This document shows, piece by piece, positions 3,001 through 62,616 of a stretch of DNA of 64,000 nucleotides (positions are counted from its first letter, which is position 1; the number at the start of each line of letters is the position of its first letter). Origin of the DNA: Podarcis erhardii (taxonomy: Eukaryota); NCBI GenBank assembly GCA_964252035.1, contig OZ176208.1; one strand, written 5' to 3'. The notes below the pieces were generated by a model. That model made no database searches. It worked only from the letters and a program-made list of their open reading frames with translations, and was not told where the DNA came from. Made by a program: the position numbers and the translations under genes.

Positions 3001-5462
3001 ATACCATACAGTACCCTACTACTTTAAACAGTCATGGCTTCCCCCAAATAATTCTGGGACCTGCAGTTTGTTAAGAGTGCTGACAGTTGCCTCACACAGC
3101 TAGTTCGCAGAGTTCGCTGTGAAGAGGGATTGATTGTTAAACAATTCGTGCAGCCTCCTTTGGGCAGTCAGCATTCTTATACAGAGAAAATAGGCTCAGG
3201 AAGTACCGTAAGTGCCTGTCATTTCAAATTATCCAGAAGCACAGAAGTGAGAAGAGCGCAGAAAAGGACCTGAATTTGCTTCTATATGCCAGTGTGTGCT
3301 GCTGCTCCTATAAGACCAAGATTGCACAAAGTAGGGAACTCTGTTGCCCATAGTCAACAGCATTAAGTTGAACTTGCTGCAAGTACAGCAGGGTGCAGAA
3401 ACTTCAGTCCTCCAGGTGTTGCTGAATGACTATTGCCATTGTATCTGACCATTGCCCATTCTGGGTGGGGCTGAAGGGAGCTGATGTTCAACAAAATTTG
3501 AAAGGTCACAGATTCTCCATCTTTGAAATACAGAATAGTTTTGTGCCCTTAAGCAATATTTATGTTAGAAATATCTGGCTGCCATGGTTTCCACATCAAG
3601 CAGGAATACTGTGGAACCAGAACAGCAGCATTTGCTAGAAGTAGAGACATTCTCAAATTATAAGAAAAGAGCGAAACATGAGTGTTAACTACCTAAAAGC
3701 CAGAGGGAACAGAGAAAGGCAATGGAGATTTTCAGGAGAGGTTCAAAGTCAGCTCTCCTCACCCCCATGCCAAGGTAAAATGGAAAAACTGCCTGTCTCT
3801 TTGTGTGACTTCTTCAGGGCAGCAAGCCTCCTAGCAAACAAAGTGGCCAGGCAAGGCTCCTGTGTTGTAGATCATTGCATAATAAGCAGAAGTGCTGCAG
3901 GAGAAGATTTCCACCATCATCACAAAACCTGCCTCCTGGAGAAAAGTTTTAGCATTTTGAATTTCTACTTCCCACCCAGTTTTAAAAGTCACAGCAGCCT
4001 TTCCAGGGAGAGGGATAGCAAAGGGCTGAAATGGTAGGGCATTGAATGAGACAACCTCTTTGAAATTTCCTTACGTAAAGTAGGGTGGAGTCACAGAAAA
4101 CTTCCAGGCAAATTATCCCCCATCCCAATTTTAGTGCAGCACTTCACTATTAATCACTTGCTCCCTACTTAACCACCCTGTTAAGGTCACAGTGGCAAAA
4201 TGAAGTCTACAGTGCAGAAATCAATTTGTGGGGAGGAAAAGTGGGAGGTTCTAATGCACATTAGTGACTGCCAAATAGCAAGTCTCACACTTCTAATACT
4301 TTTAACAGTCACAGACTGCTAGTTTTCAGTAATGTAATCAGAAATAAAATCTGACCATTTAACACCTCCTGCTCCCATTTGTGGCCATGCTCCTTTTGTG
4401 AACAAAGGTATGCAGGTTACATAATTGAGAAAATTCTATGGACAAATGCAACATATGTTCCATTCTCTGTTGAACCATTGCACCCCAACCATGATTTTAT
4501 TGGTAGATATAGGACTCCTATGCAAGTCTAAGCCATAGCACCTTTTTCTTCAAGACTGATTCCTGCTCCCACCTCCCCTGCCAACACTCTGGGAACACAG
4601 TCCACTTTTTCTTCTCGAAACTAAATTTCAAAATTATGGCGATACGATAATCTGATACAATTATGAAATTTTATGCTGGTACTCTGTACCTGATTGTATC
4701 CCTATGGCTTTCAATAAAACTCATTTTAACCATCTCCCAGCCCCATAGATGCATTACCTAACTTTATGAACGAGTCTCTCAGCACAGATGTGGTGGGAAA
4801 CTTTGGCCTTCCAGATGTTGCTCAACTGCAACTCCCATCAGCTGTAGCAAGATTGGCCAGGGGTGATGGGAGCTATAGTTCAACAACATCTGGAGGGCGA
4901 AAGGCCCCCCATGCTTGCCTTAGCAGGACACCAAAGACAGCTCAAAAGTTTATAAAACGTTTGGGTGGAAAGGTACTGTGGTTTTATACATGCACCTGCA
5001 GGCAGACACACAGGCCTGGGGAGGGAATAAGAGGAGCAAAACAGCCGGGTGGAAAGACCACGAAATCCTCGAGTAAACTCATGATGGGGAGGAATAACAC
5101 TCCCTGAACCTGATGAAGTGAAGTCCACCAAGCCTTTCCCCCTCCCCCCTTGCAGCTGCTGCAAGCACGCGTTCACTGAGAAACTCCCCAACGAACACGT
5201 GTCCGAAACGAAGGTTGGCTTCTCCCGTCAGGATCTCTTCCTCTTCCTCATTCCCTCCCACACACACACGAGAGCCACGTCAGGGCTCCGCCAAGGAGCG
5301 GAGAGCGCCCTCCGTTTACCGCGCCCCGAAGAACGTCTCGTGTGAGTGCGCACACACGTGTATTTTTTTGGGGGGGGGGGAAAGGGGAGATGCAGTCGGA
5401 GGATGCTCTGAATAGCCGAAGCCAGCCTCCCTCCAGGCCCCCGAGCCGCCCGCTCCCCTCAC

Positions 5463-5633
5463 CTCGGCCTTGGCCAGCTCCGGCCCTTGCACCGCCGGCT
5501 GCTGAGGCGGCGGCGGCTTCTGCTGCTCCTGCTGAGGCGGCGGCTCCCCCCGGTCCTGGCCATTCTCCGGCTCCGAGGCGGCGAAGGGCGCGGCGAGGAG
5601 CAGCAGCAGCAGGAGCCGCGCGGGGCCCGCCAT
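5463..5633 (-). CDS. TMEM165: TMEM165 coding exon 1 (Golgi Ca2+/Mn2+ antiporter, UPF0016 family): signal peptide and Pro/Gln-rich linker, 57 codons
   Basis: Translates MAGPARLLLLLLLAAPFAASEPENGQDRGEPPPQQEQQKPPPPQQPAVQGPELAKAE followed by the donor GAG|GTGAGG (phase 0). The end resembles human TMEM165 exon 1 (...QPVAVQGPEPARVE). It lies in a CpG island, co-oriented with and downstream of SRD5A3 as in mammals. Later exons were not found in 1-5462. Confidence 0.9.
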
Positions 5634-5656
5634 TCCCGGCGCCGAGTCCTCTCCCG

Positions 5657-5716
5657 CTAACAGGAAGAAGCGCGGCGGCGGCAGCGAGAGCGGAGGCGGC
5701 GCTTCCCCGCCGCCAT
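5657..5716 (-). other. Candidate upstream ORF in the TMEM165 5' leader (MAAGKRRLRSRCRRRASSC*)
   Basis: ATG at 5716 in context gcggctATGG, out of frame with the main ATG; TAG at 5657-5659, 23 nt before the main ATG at 5633. Valid only if the TSS lies above 5716. Confidence 0.5.
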
Positions 5717-6088
5717 AGCCGCTTCCTCCTCCGCGACCCCTCAACCAAACAACGCCGAAGCTGTTCCCTCCGCCACGCCACCGAAGCCTCAGAGGCAGGG
5801 CCCGCCCCCTTGCTCCGCATCCGCCTCTCTGATTGGTGGCGCCGGAACCAGCATGTTCGAAACATCTCCGCTATGCAAAGAGAGAGAGAGAGCTGCGCTC
5901 GAAGGGGGCGGGGCTGGGGAGAGCGAGCGAGCGAACCTATCTAACCCTACCTGGGTCACGTGGCGCTTTCCCCTCCAACCCGCCCCTCCCTCTGGGGCCG
6001 CGCGACTCGTCAAGAATTCTGGTAGTTTAAGTGGGTGGGAAATAAAGAGCCGGGCGTGGAATGTAAATTGTGCACCTTGGGATCCATG

Positions 6089-6754
6089 AGATCATGGCCA
6101 CTGGTCCCATCACCTCCTGGCAAATAGAAGGGGAAGAAATGGAGGCAGTGCGAGATTTTACTTTCTTGGGCTCCATGATCACTGCAGATGGTGACAGCAG
6201 CCACGAAATTAAAAGACGCCTGCTTCTTGGGAGGAAAGCAATGACAAACCTGGACAGCATCTTAAAAAGCAGAGACATCACCTTGCCGACAAAGGTCCGT
6301 ATAGTTAAAGCTATGGCTTTCCCAGTAGGGATGCATGGAAGTGAGAGCTGGACCATAAAGAAGGCTGATCGCCGAAGAATTGATGCTTTTGAATTATGGT
6401 GCTGGAGGAGACTCTTGAGAGTCCCGTGGACTGCAAGAAGATCAAACCTATCCATTCTTAAGGAAATCAGCCCTGAGTGCTCACTAGAAGGACAGATCCT
6501 GAAGCTGAGACTCCAATACTTTGACTACCTCATGAGAAGAGAAGACTCCCTGGAAAAGACCCTGATGTTGGGAAAGATGGAGGGCACAAGGAGAAGGGGA
6601 CAACAGAGGACGAGATGGTTGGATAGTGTCCTCGAGGCTACAAACATGAGTCTGACCAAACTGTGGGAGGCAGTGGAAGACAGGCGTGCCTGGCGTGCTC
6701 TGGTCCATGGGGTCACGAAGAGTTGGACACGACTAAATGACTAAACAACAACAA
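6089..6754 (+). mobile_element. 5'-truncated BovB (RTE clade) LINE
   Basis: ORF 6070-6744 gives the BovB RT C-terminus (IKRRLLLGRKAMTNLDSILKSRDITLPTKVRIVKAM...ELWCWRRLLRVPWTARRSN), ending in gactaaa(CAA)n. Confidence 0.95.
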
Positions 6755-7329
6755 TAGGGGATGGTGGTGCGGACCGTGTAGCAGCACATCATCCCAGGTC
6801 ACTGTTCCTTCTGTCCTGGGGAACAGCAAGCAAGGTGCTTTCTTTGCGGAAAGACAGGTTTACAATACAGATAAGGAACAGCAGGGAAGACAAAGCACCA
6901 TCGTCGGCTTAGGATAGTTTCTGAAAAGTTGCTCGAAGCAGCTCCCCGTCTCGTGGGGAAGCATTGACTCCGCCAGATGTTGTGGAGCTGCATCTCCCCC
7001 ATCATGCCTGGCCATTGGCCATCCTTCCTTGGGGCTGTTGGGAGTTCTAGGATGCTCGGCAACATCTGCATTCAGTTGCCCTGATCCTGTGAAGGAGATC
7101 TGCATCTTGTATGGCAAATAAGAGAAACAGATATTTATGGCAAACTATGGACATAAATGCACCTCTGAATAAGTACCCCGTCTATCAGCACCACACTCTT
7201 TTGCATGGAATGCACATTTTGAGGTGCTTTCAAATATGCATGCAAACAGATGCAGGCTAACAGTTTATTTCTTCGTCTTGGGTTGGGGTATTGTTGAGAG
7301 CTATTTGTTGGAGGGGGTACTGGTGGATT

Positions 7330-7770
7330 GGTCATGATGTGTGGATGCCTGATCATCATCTTCCAAAGCAACTACTCTATTCCCAACTTAAAAATGGAAA
7401 GTGTAATGCTGGTGGTCAACAAAAGAGGTTTAAAGACTGTCTTGAGGCAAATCTAAAAAAATGTAGTATAAACACTGACAACTGGGAAGCACTGGCCTGT
7501 GAGTGCTCCAGTTGGGGAACAGCCTTTACCAAAGGTGTCATGGGCTTTAAAGACACTCAAACTCAGGACGCAAGGGAGAAACGTGCTAAGAGGAAGACAT
7601 GCTTGGAAAATCCACACAGTGATCAACTCCCGCCCAGAAACCAATGTTCCCACCGTAGAAGAATGTGTGGATCCAGAATTGGCCTCCACAGTCACTTACG
7701 GACTCATTGTTAAAACTGTGTTTATGGAAGACAATCTTACTTGGCTATGAGTGATCGCTAAAGAGAAAGA
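7330..7770 (+). mobile_element. 3' end of a second RTE-clade LINE family (non-BovB)
   Basis: MPDHHLPKQLLYSQLKNGKCNAGGQQKRFKDCLEANLKK...CGSRIGLHSHLRTHC is a typical RTE C-terminus with a decayed C2H2 finger. Confidence 0.85.
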
Positions 7771-12876: not shown

Positions 12877-13802
12877 CTGAATTATGCAGAAAGAGGGTAT
12901 GTTTAGATGCTAAAAGAATCAGAATCTATATTTCTTCTAGCAGCTAGCTCAGGCGTTTCTCTCAATTGCATGTCTCATCTTGGATGACCCTCTTAATACC
13001 ATGTTCAAGATACAGGAGTCTCAAATTCTTCTCTACAGTCCTTATTCTAAAGATCTGGCATAAAGTCATGCTTATAGTTTCTATGATATCCCCTACTAAC
13101 ATAAGAGGCAAAAAATTAAGTAGTGTTTGAGCTAGGAGAGCTGGCAAATCAACACATAAAGCAGGAATGAGGAACCTGTGACCCTCCAGATATTTCCACC
13201 AGGTCCAGTCATCATGGCCAATGGTCAGACATGATGGAAGCTGCAGTCCTCCTGGTTCCCCAACCCTGATTTAAAGGAACATTGCACAGAAGTGAAATAA
13301 ATTATGGCATATTTCTATAGATCTGATAACTAATGGGGGAATTTTTCATAAAAGCAAATGAATTTAATAAAGCAACAACTTATAGACACTTACAGCAAAT
13401 TTAATATGCTGTACTTCTGTGATTCATCAACAGGAACTAGTTTAAAATCCCAGCTCTGCAGTATGTACTATCCCAGAACTCACACAGGCAACAGAAATAT
13501 CTCTGTCCCTGCCTGCTCCCAATTCTGTTTGATTTAATTCCCCCCCCCCCCCACAAAAAAAGAGCTAAAGGCATTTTACTTTGGTCTACAATAAGGGAAA
13601 CAAATATTTATAAAAACACTTATGGCATAAATTTGCACAAAACTACATGCAAGTATGTGCCACAAAGTTCTACTTCAGTAACTATTTCAATCCAGTCTGC
13701 AAAAGAGTTCTGCGTAAACTAAAAGCTCACATTCTGATTTGTGAACAGAAGCTTGCCCTAGTAAATGCATTCTTTATTATCCTTGTAATTATGTTTGACC
13801 TG

Positions 13803-25435: not shown

Positions 25436-25573
25436 CAGCAGTTCTCAACCTGTGGGTCCCCAGATATTGTTGGACTACAACTCCCATCATCCCTGAGCTC
25501 TGGCCTTGCTAGCTAGGGGTGATGGGAGTTGTAGTTCAACAACATCTGGGGACCCACAGGTTGAGAAACGCTG
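25436..25573. mobile_element. hAT MITE
   Basis: About 30-bp inverted ends cagcagttctcaacctgtgggtccccagat / atctggggacccacaggttgagaaacgctg; 8-bp TSD AGCTAGAG / AGCTAGAA. Confidence 0.85.
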
Positions 25574-29184: not shown

Positions 29185-30729
29185 TATGCAAATTTCAGGG
29201 TGGGGTTCAGGGGGTGAACATGGAGTAAGGCTTGCTCCCAATTGAGCAGTGTGCTTCTGAAAGCTAGCCACTAGGGACCAACAGTAGGCAATATTCTGCC
29301 TCAGTCAGCGGCGGATTTTAGGGTAGTTTGACTGGTTCCCCCCGTACTGGGTGTCAAGCCTAGTGGGTACTGCAGGGTGTCACAACTACAAATGTAGTGA
29401 ACTGAGCAAAATAGAAAGCAAGAGGTGGGGGCACCAAATCTTGACCTTGCACAGGGCGTTGCTGAAAATTGAAAGACCAGAATCTGCCCTTTAACCCAGA
29501 AATTGTGTTATTTGTTGTACAGTGCCACTCTTCTGTTATATACAAAAGAAGGCAGGCAGGCAGGCAGGTCCCGGCTAGGGCAGATTAACTTCCACTGGAA
29601 TAACACACTAACTCGATCTCAAATCTTCCAGGATTTCTACATTTTTACAGAGATCCGTGTGAATCCTTAAGTGCTTCTAGTGCTGTAATGTTATCATGTA
29701 CACCTAATAAATGTGACTAAGAGCTGCTACTGTGAAAGGCTGGGATTTAGGACTTATGAAATCATATCCCAGGAGGTAACCCAATAAATTCAGCATAGTT
29801 AGGCAGCCTAATGAAAGCAAATGCCATATACAGGAGAGAGAACCAAGTTTTTCAGCATCTTCAGATACATTGCGACATAGAAAATGCTCGCATGAAAATC
29901 TTCAAAAACTATTTTGTCATTATAGATCTGGAGATACTATATTGATCATCACAGTCACATGTGAAGCAAAGGTGTTTTTTGTTTGATCACACCGACTTCC
30001 CATTAGCATGCCGACACTGACAGAAAAAAAAGCAACGGAACCTTTGAGATTTCGGTGAAATGTCATAACAAAGCTAAGGCTTAACAGGTTTCTGAAGGGA
30101 TTGATTTCCAGGAAGGAAGTGGTTATTTTCAGAAACTTCAAGCTAATGACACGAATACCATTTCTCCTGAGTGATAAGGTTGATAGATCTATGCCATTTG
30201 TAGGTAGCCTAATCCTTTTGCTCCAGACTTGTGCCCTTAATATAGAGACAGCGAATCTATGCAGTTAGGCTGGTTCCGGTGTAATTTAGGATCTGCTCAT
30301 GACATGTTATGTGACTACTTCGTTCTGGTGTATGCAAAATCTACACTGGGATTGGGGAATAAATGAGTCGTTTTGGTCCTTACACATTTGTGCTTGCCAG
30401 ATCCCCAACTCCCAGGTGTAGGTAGGATGGAGTGGTTCATAAACGCCTATGTAGAGATGTAAGAAATTAGAGAGCATGGTAAAATCAGTTTTGCTTTTCT
30501 CATTGAAGGAAAATTCATTTGAATATTCTTTCCATTACCCCATCCTCTCCAACTGATTTGCTATTCTTGTGCTTACCATCAGTCTTCCCTTCTGGTGTTT
30601 CCCTTGCTGTCAACATTTAAAGTGAAGGGCCCTTGAGGTCAGGAACCTGTTTGCCTTACACTATTCTTTAAAACCCCATGTACACATCTGACACCATATT
30701 GCACATCCGCATTTATCCTTTTGCCCATA

Positions 30730-34334: not shown

Positions 34335-35395
34335 GAAGAAAGGCTTGTCCATCTGTGAGACTGTTAAAGCAATTCTAGAGAGACTGGAGGATCTGTAGAG
34401 TAACTCACATTTCTCAAGTGCATAGGGTGAGCGATTTGTCATGCATCTGGAGGTCTTGGCAGGGCTAAACTACATGAGGAGATCAAGTGGCTAAAGCCAC
34501 TCTGTGATGCTCTGGCTCAAATTAAGTAATTATCCTTTTTTCATGTGTAGCATTAGTGAGCAAGTCGGACCATGCGAAATAATTGCACTGGTAGTGAGCA
34601 TAGTAATTTTTTTTTTTATGATGATGCCAATTTTAATTCTGTTTCCTAGCCAATGAGCTCTGGAAGATGTACTTGGTAGGATGTTTATGCTCTGGTGTTT
34701 TTTAATTAAATTGCTGACTGAACACTTGGTAAGATGACCGAAAGTTTTGTATTTCCTGATTAGCATCTAAAAAACCTGGAAGGGAATCAAGGATGCCTGG
34801 AGGTTGCCACCAGGAAAGACAGAGGAAAGAGCCCACCAGTGGCTGATAAGCCTTAAGGGTGATAAATCACAATCCCTACATCTGATTGAGCATTGCATCT
34901 GATCAGTTGAGTTATCTTTAAGAAAAGAGGAACTGCTATGTTGGGTCTGGCAACTGTAAATGCTAATGTGGCTTTATAGCTGTGTGGACTGATGCTAGAA
35001 GAAAGGTTTGCTGCTACGTGCTCAGGTATTAACTGTTAGCAGGAATTTTCAAACTTACTGTATCTTTCTTGGTGAAGTTTGGCATAACTTGTGGATCACT
35101 TCGCTGTGTTGCCCTGTAGATTTACCAAGTCAGAATATGTTCCTTTAGGCTGGTTCATGCACAGACCCAGAGTAAGGCAGTCTGCATAATAAACCTTTAA
35201 TGTAGTGGTGTGGAAATGTTAAAGGTTTAATATGCAGACTGCCTTACTCTGGGGTAATGTAGTGGTGTGGAAATGTTTTAAGCCCAAGGGATACATTCCA
35301 TTCTGGGCAGCCTCCCAAGGGCCACATGGTGGGTGGGGCCATAGGCAACAGTGGCCGGAGCAGCAAGTGTAAATTTCACCTTTATACAGTGGGCT

Positions 35396-36444
35396 TTGTA
35401 CAATGCGAAAGGCTGGGCTGGATGAATCCCTAGCCGGAATTAAGATTGCCGTAAGAAATATCAACAACCTCAGATATGCAGATGACACAATCTTGATGGC
35501 AGAAAGTGAGGAGGAATTAAAGAACCTTTTAATGAGGGTGAAAGAGGAGATATGGTTTGAAGCTCAACATATTTGAAGCAAATATGGTTTGAAGCTCAAC
35601 ATCAAAAAAACGAAGATCATGGCCACTGGTCCCATCACCTCCTGGCAAATAGAAGGGGAAGAAATGGAGGCAGTGAGAGATTTTACTTTCTTGGGCTCCA
35701 TCATCACTGCAGATGGTGACAACAGCCACGAAATTAAAAGACGCCTGCTTCTTGGGATAAAAGCAATGACAAACCTAGACAGCATCTTAAAAAGCAGAGA
35801 CATCACCTTGCCAACAAAGGTCCGTATAGTAAAAGCTATGGTTTTCCCAGTAGTGATGTATGAAAGTGAGAGCTGGACCATAAGGAAGGCTGATCGCCGA
35901 AGAATTGATGCTTTTGAATTATGGTGCTGGAGGAGACTCTTGAGAGTCCCATGGACTGCAAGAAGATCAAACCTATCCATTCTTAAGGAAATCAGCCCTG
36001 AGTGTTCACTGGAAGGACAGATCGTGAAGCTGAGGCTCCAGTACTTTGGCCACCTCATGAGAAGAGAAGACTCCCTGGAAAAGACCCTGATGTTGGGAAA
36101 GATTGAGGGCACAAGGAGAAGGGGATGACAGAGGACGAGATGGTTGGACAGTGTTCTCGAAGCTACCAGCGTGAGTTTAACCAAACTGTGGGAGGTAGTG
36201 GAAGACAGGCGTGCCTGGCGTGCTCTGGTCCATGGGGTCACGAAGAGTCGGACACGACTAAATGACTAAACAACAATAGGGGATGGTGGTGCGGACCGTG
36301 TAGCAGCACATCATCCCAGGTCACTGTTCCTTCTGTCCTGGGAGTTGGGGGACTTAACCCAGCAAGCAAGACAGGAGTGCCTGGCATGCTCTGGTCCATG
36401 GGGTCGCAAAGAGTCGGACACAACTAAACGACTAAACAACAACA
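35396..36444 (+). mobile_element. Composite BovB LINE with two 3' ends separated by a foreign segment
   Basis: RT YADD region (agatatgcagatgacaca) and C-terminal ORF 35589-36128; first tail ends 36276, second BovB 3' end 36371-36444; 10-bp TSD ACAGTGGGCT at 35386-35395 and 36445-36454. Confidence 0.92.
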
Positions 36445-38149
36445 ACAGTGGGCTAGTTGCGTACCCAGATGCAGCAACCCTTTCCCTGGGAGCCAGGTCA
36501 TTAAGGGTGACATGACAAGACCAGACAACATTCTTTGGGATTAAAATTGGCCACAACTTTAATAATTTCAGAAATAGGTGAACCTTGGCTATATGGGGGG
36601 GACAGAAAACTGCCTGCTTTCCCATTGTCCTAACGGATATTTCTCTACTTCCGATGCACAGACACTCTTGGAAGCAGGAAGGTTCTCTGCCTGAAACCTT
36701 GGGAGTATTGCTTGCCAGTTTTGTGGTTAACCCTGAAATAGCTGTTAGGGTAAATTAGGGAGAAGTGGCTGTGGAAGGGGCTGAAAATATCTACTCATCA
36801 TCCAATAGTTTGCCACTTAATGTCATGATTCTTATAAGGAATAACCAAAGATTATCTAACAGTGTTGCTGTTTCCAACATTTTATTATCTTTTCATGCAG
36901 ATCTGACTAATGGATACTCATTCCCCCCCCCTACAAATGGCCCCTTTGGAGGTAAGTAGCAGCTGTGGTGTATTTTGGGCAGGAAAATGGCATGGGGGAG
37001 GAGAGAGTTAATCTTCTTGTCATGCAATGTAGTCCTGATCTGGATTAGGGCTGTGAGTTGTTGTTGTTGTTGTTTTGGTGCCAAGCATACTTTTCGTAGT
37101 GACCCTTAAAATTGATTACGGAGATGGAAATTGTTCCTTTCTCAGAAACAAGATGCTGTGAAGGAAAGCAATTACTCAGCATTCTGATTCCATGTACTGT
37201 ATATGTTCCTGGGTGTGCAACAAGAAGCTGTAGCTGTGTTAGGCAGAGCCAGTATGGTGCAATGGATAGTGGGTTGGATCGAGGAGAACCCAAGTTCAGA
37301 TCCCTGCTGTCAGCCTTAAACAATCTCACAGCCATATGATCAGGGGGAAAAATGAGTTCATGCATATTGCTACGATCAACTCTGAAGATGCTTGGGATGT
37401 ATATCTTGGTGGTTTGAAAGCTTCTTGTTGTGGTAAGCATTCTCATTCTTTCTGCATGCTAGAAGTCTTCACAATATCAAAAGATGTGAGTGTAAATAAA
37501 CAGTGTCCTGATTTCTGGCCCCAGAATAATGGAGTTTTGCATAATGGAAGGCCAGCTCTAGTGTGAACAAGAGCAGTTGGAAATGGAGGTTACACCATAT
37601 GGCAGGAAGCCATTTATCTGGCTTTGTTGCTGGTGGGAGTGAAAACTGACAGGACAATGCTATCTGCAGGGCTCACAGACAGCCAGTTCCTGCTCATCTC
37701 CCTCATGTGAGGACTTGCATTGATCTTACCGTGACAACTAATGTGGATAAGGTGAATGAGCTTTGTGCCTTTAATTATAAAGGTTCAGTAATTGGCTGTC
37801 CTGGTTAGATCTGTTTCACTGCAGACTGGAAGCCAGGGGATTTCATGGTATAATAAAGAAATGCAGAAAAACCACCAGTGTCAAATTAAAAGAGAGAAAA
37901 CAACTTTGTGTGTGTTCTGCTAGATGCCCCCTTTCTGCAATCTCCGTTCAAAGCAAGGTGTTTGAGTGAATTTTCTGAAGATGTTTAAGCATGAGACATA
38001 GCCAGCCTTCCGAAACACTCAGCTCACTTTGAAGCATCTTTCTCTTCAGCCCCGCTGAGATGATCAACAGCATTTACTTCCATGTAAGTGTGTTTAAGAT
38101 TGCACACATAACCTTTGCAGTGTAAGCAATGTTGACAATGATCTCCACC

Positions 38150-61479: not shown

Positions 61480-61906
61480 CTCCAAGAAATGCACCCCAGA
61501 AGAAGAGGGGCGCATTGGGGAGAAACATCAGGGTCGGAGGCGGGGCTAGCGTGTCAAGCCCCTCCTCCGAAGGAGCGCTGGGCCCGGGGATTGGTCAGCA
61601 CGGATTTGCAAAACCCCGCCTGGCGGGGAAGATTCTGGCCAGGCTGCTTGGGTATCGGAGCGCCTCGAGGAGAATCCGCAGAAATATTGTTTCTCTGCCC
61701 CGCCTAAGGAAGTGCGCTTGTCGCGCCTGCTCCGCGGATTTTCTGGCTAGCTGAAGCGGTCGGATCGAAGGCAAAGCGGCTGAGGCTTTGGCCCCGCAGC
61801 TGATGTCTGGACTATAATAGAGATCACCCGGGGTTGGGTAGCTTCCCCTGGACTTGACCTGCTCTGCCACCGCGTTTTGTTGTGGTTCTTGTTGCTCCGA
61901 GGAGAC
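61480..61906 (+). promoter_or_regulatory. CpG-island promoter and 5' UTR of KDR
   Basis: CpG-rich; GC box GAGGCGGGGC (61537-61546), ATTGG boxes (61514, 61590) and ETS site AGGAAGTG (61707-61714). The island continues into intron 1 to about 62700. Confidence 0.75.
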
Positions 61907-61979
61907 ATGGAGCTGGCGGCGGGACTGGGACTGATCCTGGCGCTGTGGGCTGCCGCGGAGCCCGGGCTGGTTGAGGCGG
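61907..61979 (+). CDS. KDR: KDR (VEGFR2) coding exon 1, signal peptide
   Basis: gagacATGG context; MELAAGLGLILALWAAAEPGLVEA-G followed by the strong phase-1 donor G|GTAAGA. A short signal-peptide first exon ending in phase 1, an MEL- start as in bird KDR, and divergent orientation upstream of SRD5A3 all match KDR. Identity rests largely on synteny because only 24 codons are visible. Confidence 0.78.
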
Positions 61980-62480
61980 GTAAGAGGAGCGCATGAGTGT
62001 GTGTGTGTTGTTGTTGTTGTTTATTGTTGGGTTGGTTGGTGGATAACTTAGCCGATCTCCTAGGGGCTCCCCTTCCCTAGGATCCAGGGAATCAGCTCAG
62101 CCAAGCTAGATTGGCACAGATCACACTCACACCCCCCCCACCCGCCGCCTCCCCAGGTGCCGAGGAATTCCCTGGGTTTGGGGGAAGAAATAGCCTGTCG
62201 AAGGATAGATGAATTTGGCGCGCGCGGGGGGTGGGTGGGGGGCTTTTTGCACAAAGAAAGGTGACAAGAACCAGCTGGAAGCGTAGCCCCTTCCACTGGA
62301 ACTAAGCCCCACCGAATTCAGCTGCACTTACTTCCGAGTAGACGTGGCCGGGATTGCTCTGCTGAGCGCCGATGTTCCGCGTTGTCTTGCGCAGCGCCTG
62401 GCGCACGGAGCGAGCCGAATCCAAAATGAGCAGGTGATCTTGGCGACCCGACCCTTCAGCCACATGTTGGCTTCTCTGGT

Positions 62481-62616
62481 CATAGAATCATAGAATTGGA
62501 AGGGGGTCCCGAGGATCATCTAGTCCAACCCCCTGCTATGCAGGAATATGCCGCTGACCCTGACTCGGGGATCGAACCTGCAACCTTGGCGTTGTCAGCA
62601 CCGCGCTCTAGCCAAC
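62481..62616 (-). mobile_element. tRNA-Ile-derived SINE with CR1 tail in KDR intron 1
   Basis: Minus strand gttggctagagcgcggtgctgacaacgccaaggttgcaggttcgatcccc resembles tRNA-Ile(AAT) and runs into ggttggactagatgatc...attctatgattctatg; 5' end of the A box is missing. Confidence 0.85.

Follow-up and report, generated by a model that had tools for sequence, protein, structure and literature searches.

We show here that DNA lying behind one BovB copy has been copied into the interior of another, and that the copying ran from a locus at 6.7 kb to a locus at 36 kb of the window, by which we mean the whole stretch of 64 kb that was analysed. The recipient is a 5'-truncated BovB at 35.4 kb (35396-36201 and 36368-36444), and the foreign sequence is an internal patch of 166 nt in total (36202-36367), made up of the last 75 BovB bases of the donor with its tail, a 66-mer of donor flank, 17 filler bases and an 11-mer. 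A sequence-only reading of this DNA had proposed the 6.7-kb locus as the origin of copied sequence, either by ectopic gene conversion that ran past the homology or by reverse-transcriptase template switching. The core of this proposal stands, since the 6.7-kb arrangement is the older one and identity between the two loci jumps at the patch. We infer that the copying was DNA-templated and took place after the insertion of the BovB. The locus is one clear example of copying between neighbouring BovB copies by routes already known, and no new kind of element.

Composition of the recipient element

The composite consists of the following parts.

35386-35395 (+): left copy of the 10-bp target duplication, ACAGTGGGCT; the exact 10-mer occurs again at 36445
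35396-36201 (+): body of the recipient BovB, 5'-truncated, with the C-terminal part of the reverse-transcriptase ORF; the translation matches BovB proteins of Podarcis and Zootoca
36202-36276 (+): start of the patch, the last 75 nt of BovB with the tail, of the 6.7-kb type by the variants shared with that copy
36277-36342 (+): the 66-mer, copied from the unique DNA 3' of the 6.7-kb BovB tail, 66/66 against 6755-6820
36343-36359 (+): filler of 17 nt, AGTTGGGGGACTTAACC, at a place where the donor has GAA (6821-6823) in the alignment
36360-36370 (+): the 11-mer CAGCAAGCAAG, equal to donor 6824-6834; its terminal AAG doubles as the first AAG of the next part
36368-36444 (+): 3' end with (CAA)n tail that belongs to the recipient itself and continues its body colinearly
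36445-36454 (+): right copy of the 10-bp target duplication, ACAGTGGGCT

All parts have the same orientation and, as had been described before, one duplication of 10 bp (ACAGTGGGCT at 35386-35395 and at 36445-36454) encloses the whole. The two recipient parts are colinear: with the 6.7-kb copy as reference, 36201 aligns to 6676 and 36368 to 6677. Thus, without 36202-36367 the element would be a plain BovB within its target duplication. This changes how the second tail is to be understood. It is present, as had been stated; however, it belongs to the element's own original 3' end, and only the 166-nt internal patch is foreign. BovB ORF remnants of the window are 88-92% identical to proteins of Podarcis muralis, P. 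lilfordi and Zootoca vivipara, and Sauria-type SINE heads are present in the window, both of which point to a lacertid lizard. The same BovB carries a further insertion of 27 nt at 35550-35576, composed of a 21-nt copy of the adjoining downstream sequence (ATATGGTTTGAAGCTCAACAT) and about 6 filler bases, which disrupts the ORF within the canonical KEESAKYGLKLN of Podarcis proteins.

Between 36277-36342 and 6755-6820 all 66 positions are identical, in agreement with the earlier count, and the exact match extends 8 nt further leftward into AACAACAA, giving 74/74. On the right the identity block ends abruptly (after 36342/6820). The window holds only two copies of the 66-mer. The sequence CAGCAAGCAAG, correctly reported as common to 6824-6834 and 36360-36370, follows the 66-mer after 17 nt at 36 kb and after 3 nt at 6.7 kb; the pair is treated here as homologous, our own estimate for a chance recurrence that near the block end being about 10^-4.

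Divergence from the donor is distributed unevenly along the element. The recipient body differs from the 6.7-kb copy at 33 of 588 sites (35614-36201; 5.6%), whereas the patch differs from the donor by a single substitution in 141 (36202-36342). An upstream difference had been noted before and an identity jump near the 3' end had been predicted, and the jump is found at the boundary defined by the duplication (Fisher p=0.005, binomial 0.003), a boundary that was fixed independently by the duplication and not by the substitutions. An unguided change-point scan of the substitutions is borderline, with p about 0.05. The BovB part of the patch differs from 6677-6743 at 1 of 67 sites, a CpG site (36249 C vs 6724 T), and has one CAA unit fewer; it differs from the recipient's own 3' end at 6/67 sites, and that 3' end from the 6.7-kb copy at 7/67. 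Two variants that the patch shares with the donor, C (36210/6685) and T (36263/6738), have no counterpart in the 13.8-kb copy and in the second 3' end, in line with what had been pointed out for these bases. The left junction lies inside homology (36197-36209), between the last recipient-type variant at 36196 and the first donor-type variant at 36210. The right junction is a 3-nt AAG overlap (36368-36370), through which, as had been proposed, the element re-enters BovB.

Classical LINE 3' transduction shares with this locus that unique DNA 3' of a source tail travels with LINE sequence. We rejected it because the body of the element differs by 5.6% from the donor and extends past the donor's 5' truncation point; on its 5' side it exceeds the donor by 218 nt and hence is not derivable from it. 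In contrast to a transduction, the upstream body is thus not that of the source, and what stands 3' of the transduced piece is the end of the element itself, not just a new tail.

The 17-nt filler matches neither locus, and within the window it has no significant match. A candidate source at 30403-30416 (-) was discarded, since even this best match, a 14-mer (CCTGGGAGTTGGGG), has an E-value of about 0.02 to 0.6 depending on the scoring and is not significant. At the donor, contigs of two related species, B and D, have no indel at 6821-6823. A filler of 17 nt between donor pieces that lie 3 nt apart (6820 and 6824) is unexplained by the repair or the reverse-transcriptase model described below, and is awkward for any.

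Donor locus, copy number and direction of copying

The donor locus has two parts.

6089-6754 (+): donor BovB, 5'-truncated, with a (CAA)3 tail; its 5' junction is also present in contigs of species B and D
6755-6834 (+): donor flank, with the 66-mer, GAA and CAGCAAGCAAG, followed by single-copy DNA to about 6972; one contig per species runs from the tail to 7228

The donor BovB has an intact ORF remnant of 218 codons, and the uninterrupted reading frame over 6070-6744 (+) counts 224 codons, though the remnant is common to three species. A search for a target duplication of the 6.7-kb BovB found none; the 13.8-kb BovB has its own duplication of 12 bp. The donor is located upstream of a CpG-island promoter, at a distance of about 0.4 kb, and faces away from this promoter. 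The CpG island (5001-6500) contains an exon-1-like ORF on the minus strand (5316-5744, delimited more narrowly as about 5440-5630; MAGPARLLLL...AVQGPELAKAE), which we take to resemble the human TMEM165 N-terminus. Judged by this likeness of the ORF, the label of TMEM165 upstream DNA that had been given to the donor flank is plausible. A second CpG island lies at 61501-62500. Neither a UPF0016 nor a kinase motif was found in the window, and the KDR regulatory interval named earlier as the site of the recipient is a putative label.

Some further features of the donor surroundings may be recorded. GATGGTGGTGC, with which the 66-mer begins, is able to form a helix of 11 bp with GCACCATCGTC, situated 125 nt further downstream; the stretch (6757-6905) has no family match. 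A palindromic, MITE-like old repeat occurs on both strands at 6973-7068, 4812-4896, 13180-13246 and 25460-25549 with 64-72% identity, and its copy at about 6973 is placed just downstream of the donor flank. An ORF at 7291-7713 (+), ending in ...SRIGLHSHLRTHC, presumably resembles the C-terminal zinc-knuckle end of another LINE family (CR1/L2-like).

The copy number of the 66-mer was addressed with Logan contigs of four related species (A, B, D and G), placed on 6000-7350 at 95% likeness. Over the BovB part (6092-6781) the summed contig depths are 10^6-10^7, and nearly all of the 21,809-75,057 contigs per run are found there. From 6782, a position inside the 66-mer, to 7228 there is exactly one contig path each in species A, B and D, continuous with the BovB tail, so that in these three lacertid species the 66-mer and the next 400 bases stand on a single contig path per species. 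In species G no contig covers the 66-mer at 95% likeness. Hence, we show a low copy number of the 66-mer, in the sense that many extra copies are excluded while a handful of exactly identical ones is possible, all runs being contigs whose depth is not copy number. A common repeat behind many BovB copies had been named earlier as a case that would undo the proposal; the 66-mer is no such repeat, with a single contig path per species set against 21,809-75,057 contigs per run. For the same reason, one path in A, B and D and none in G, we rejected a transducing or composite repeat subfamily in which the 66-mer would commonly follow BovB tails. A 21-mer taken from the 66-mer gave two chance matches among metagenome contigs, both in GC-rich bacterial contigs.

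These contigs also settle the direction of copying. Species B and D have the BovB 5' junction and the continuity of tail, 66-mer and flank, and differ from the window there by about 2%. Thus the arrangement at 6.7 kb is orthologous in A, B and D, predates their split and is the older copy. At 6813/36335 both copies of species A have G, while species B and D have C, and over 77 unique bases the 36-kb copy shows 0 differences from the 6.7-kb locus of species A. Taken together, the ancestral arrangement at 6.7 kb, the absence of differences over the 77 bases and the G at 6813 in both copies of species A identify the 6.7-kb locus as the donor and the event as recent. The patch is young, with 1 substitution in 141, at a CpG site, and the G of the species-A type.

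In run X1 the contig over the 66-mer begins at 6747, which is the left edge of the 74-nt identity, whereas the contigs of species B and D reach 6735 and 6731. This start fits a second junction with a shorter tail in species A only, an agreement that is suggestive only; X1 may be the assembled individual itself. In species D the contig path breaks within the 66-mer, with a k-1 overlap at 6774-6803 (6774-6804 region), a sign that this species may be heterozygous there or may have another, partial copy of the 66-mer.

Repair and other possible routes to the patch

With a probability of about 60%, we attribute the patch to DNA-level repair that invaded a nearby BovB copy, ran on into its flank and was closed by microhomology. 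A plain 5'-truncated BovB would have inserted at 35.4 kb, giving rise to the 10-bp duplication, and a break or a stalled replication fork would later have occurred about 75 nt from its 3' end (equivalent to 6676/6677). The homologous BovB that lies 29.5 kb away on this chromosome and strand may then have served as pairing partner for the broken left end, which would have been extended along this donor through the last 75 nt of BovB, the tail and about 80 nt of unique flank. Finally, the new strand would have been released and joined to the other broken end by the 3-nt AAG microhomology, the 17 filler bases being added en route. Such an event would belong to one-sided invasion, or to synthesis-dependent strand annealing combined with end joining; an identical structure would also result from template switching during replication, as in MMBIR. 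One-sided invasion and ectopic gap repair are said to have precedents in work by Nassif and colleagues and by Belmaaza and Chartrand, both from 1994 and both in the reference list of PMC4888836.

Several observations fit this route. Given the colinearity of the recipient parts, a single break accounts for the donor-type start of the patch and for the resumption of the element's own sequence alike. The ancestral state of the donor locus and the youth of the patch agree with this route as well. The left junction in homology and the right junction in microhomology with filler form the pattern of coupled homologous and end-joining repair. The patch is near-identical to one donor locus in a diverged background, and one of its junctions is homologous, the other microhomologous, with the recipient colinear across the patch. 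Homology search by DNA is biased towards proximity in cis; template RNA is not known to show such a bias. Only two other BovB 3' ends occur within 30 kb, the donor being one of them, against tens of thousands of BovB contigs per run. We favour repair over switching of a reverse transcriptase because a single break point explains both patch boundaries, and because the nearness of the donor fits a cis-biased search better than a freely diffusing RNA. Known cases of ectopic homology-directed repair, including P-element gap repair, have the same combination of a homology junction with a junction of 3-nt microhomology and filler. There too the donor is unchanged and near in cis, and the copied tract runs from the repeat into unique DNA. 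The present case differs in being a single natural locus at which the break is deduced from the product, and in that the BovB copies are only about 94% alike.

The alternative of most substance is that template switching of the BovB reverse transcriptase made the patch during the original insertion, which we regard as possible, if unlikely. The enzyme would have copied 75 nt of its own RNA, jumped via AAG to a read-through or divergent-promoter RNA of the 6.7-kb locus, copied flank, tail and BovB 3' end from it, and returned by homology to the first uncopied position of its own RNA. This scheme gains from the uniform orientation of every part and from the one target duplication around everything, and double template jumps of LINE reverse transcriptases within one duplication are documented (PMC2104539; 10.1101/2025.02.02.635956). 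The single duplication, however, fits the repair and the reverse-transcriptase models equally. The second duplication-insertion of the element, at 35550-35576, is in keeping with a slipping reverse transcriptase. It may have arisen as another template slip in the event that made the patch, and counts against repair in so far as both changes could stem from one error-prone reverse transcription. At least three switches are needed on this route, and the exact colinear return is a coincidence unless an RNA:cDNA hybrid compels it, which such a hybrid could do. Moreover, the template RNA could originate anywhere in the genome, yet the donor is only 29.5 kb away. The position of the donor offers a source for such an RNA, since it points away from the CpG island with its minus-strand exon-1-like ORF and a divergent transcript would hold it in sense. 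From this position a putative donor RNA in the germ line is plausible only. The more specific version, in which the BovB enzyme jumped onto a nascent divergent transcript of the CpG-island promoter that carried an embedded BovB 3' end, seems to us rather doubtful. Chimeras made by LINE reverse transcriptases, such as the bipartite or tripartite U6/L1 type, likewise have several sources in one orientation within one duplication and the LINE 3' end at their 3' side (PMC2104539). They differ in that different transcripts are placed end to end. Here the foreign part sits inside the element, has homology at one of its borders, and is followed by a colinear continuation of the element. Chimeras of this kind were not found for BovB or other RTE elements in the literature searched.

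Two other readings take the 66-mer or the composite to be something else altogether. If the 66-mer were the BovB 5' terminus, with an HDV-like ribozyme head, both loci would be tail-to-head junctions produced by end-to-end template jumps, or members of a transducing subfamily. The first bases of the 66-mer, GGGGATG, are able to pair with a CATCCC placed 27 nt further along, and 6757-6905 (+) folds somewhat better than shuffled sequences (z = -2.4). A P3 helix next to P1, however, could not be placed by hand, Rfam gave no ribozyme match at either locus, and over the 66-mer there is no non-orthologous contig at 95% likeness in the four species, against a summed depth of 10^6-10^7 for BovB proper. 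We therefore consider this reading very improbable, and the 66-mer was rejected as an HDV-like head of BovB, as neither the nested double-pseudoknot core (P1, P1.1, P2, P3, P4) nor the many copies of such a head were found. A mis-join of reads from both BovB loci during assembly is conceivable in so far as the two share long near-identical BovB sequence. It would not create a tail shorter by one CAA, a 17-nt filler and a microhomology joint, and the contig start of run X1 at exactly 6747 is as expected from a real second junction with the shorter tail, although this last point is suggestive only. An artefact of this sort is extremely improbable in our judgement.

Meaning for dispersed BovB copies

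Being a single locus, the composite leaves general views as they are; the non-coding DNA that was duplicated amounts to about 77 nt, with nothing showing function. Were the jump onto a divergent promoter transcript true, RTE-clade LINEs could pick up and carry off promoter-proximal DNA by way of RNAs that need only include the 3' recognition region of these LINEs, and such pick-up would occur preferentially from spatially close loci. With repair of the DNA as the preferred route, the patch illustrates that dispersed LINE copies tens of kilobases apart can serve as landing pads by which short unique DNA from near a promoter is copied elsewhere.
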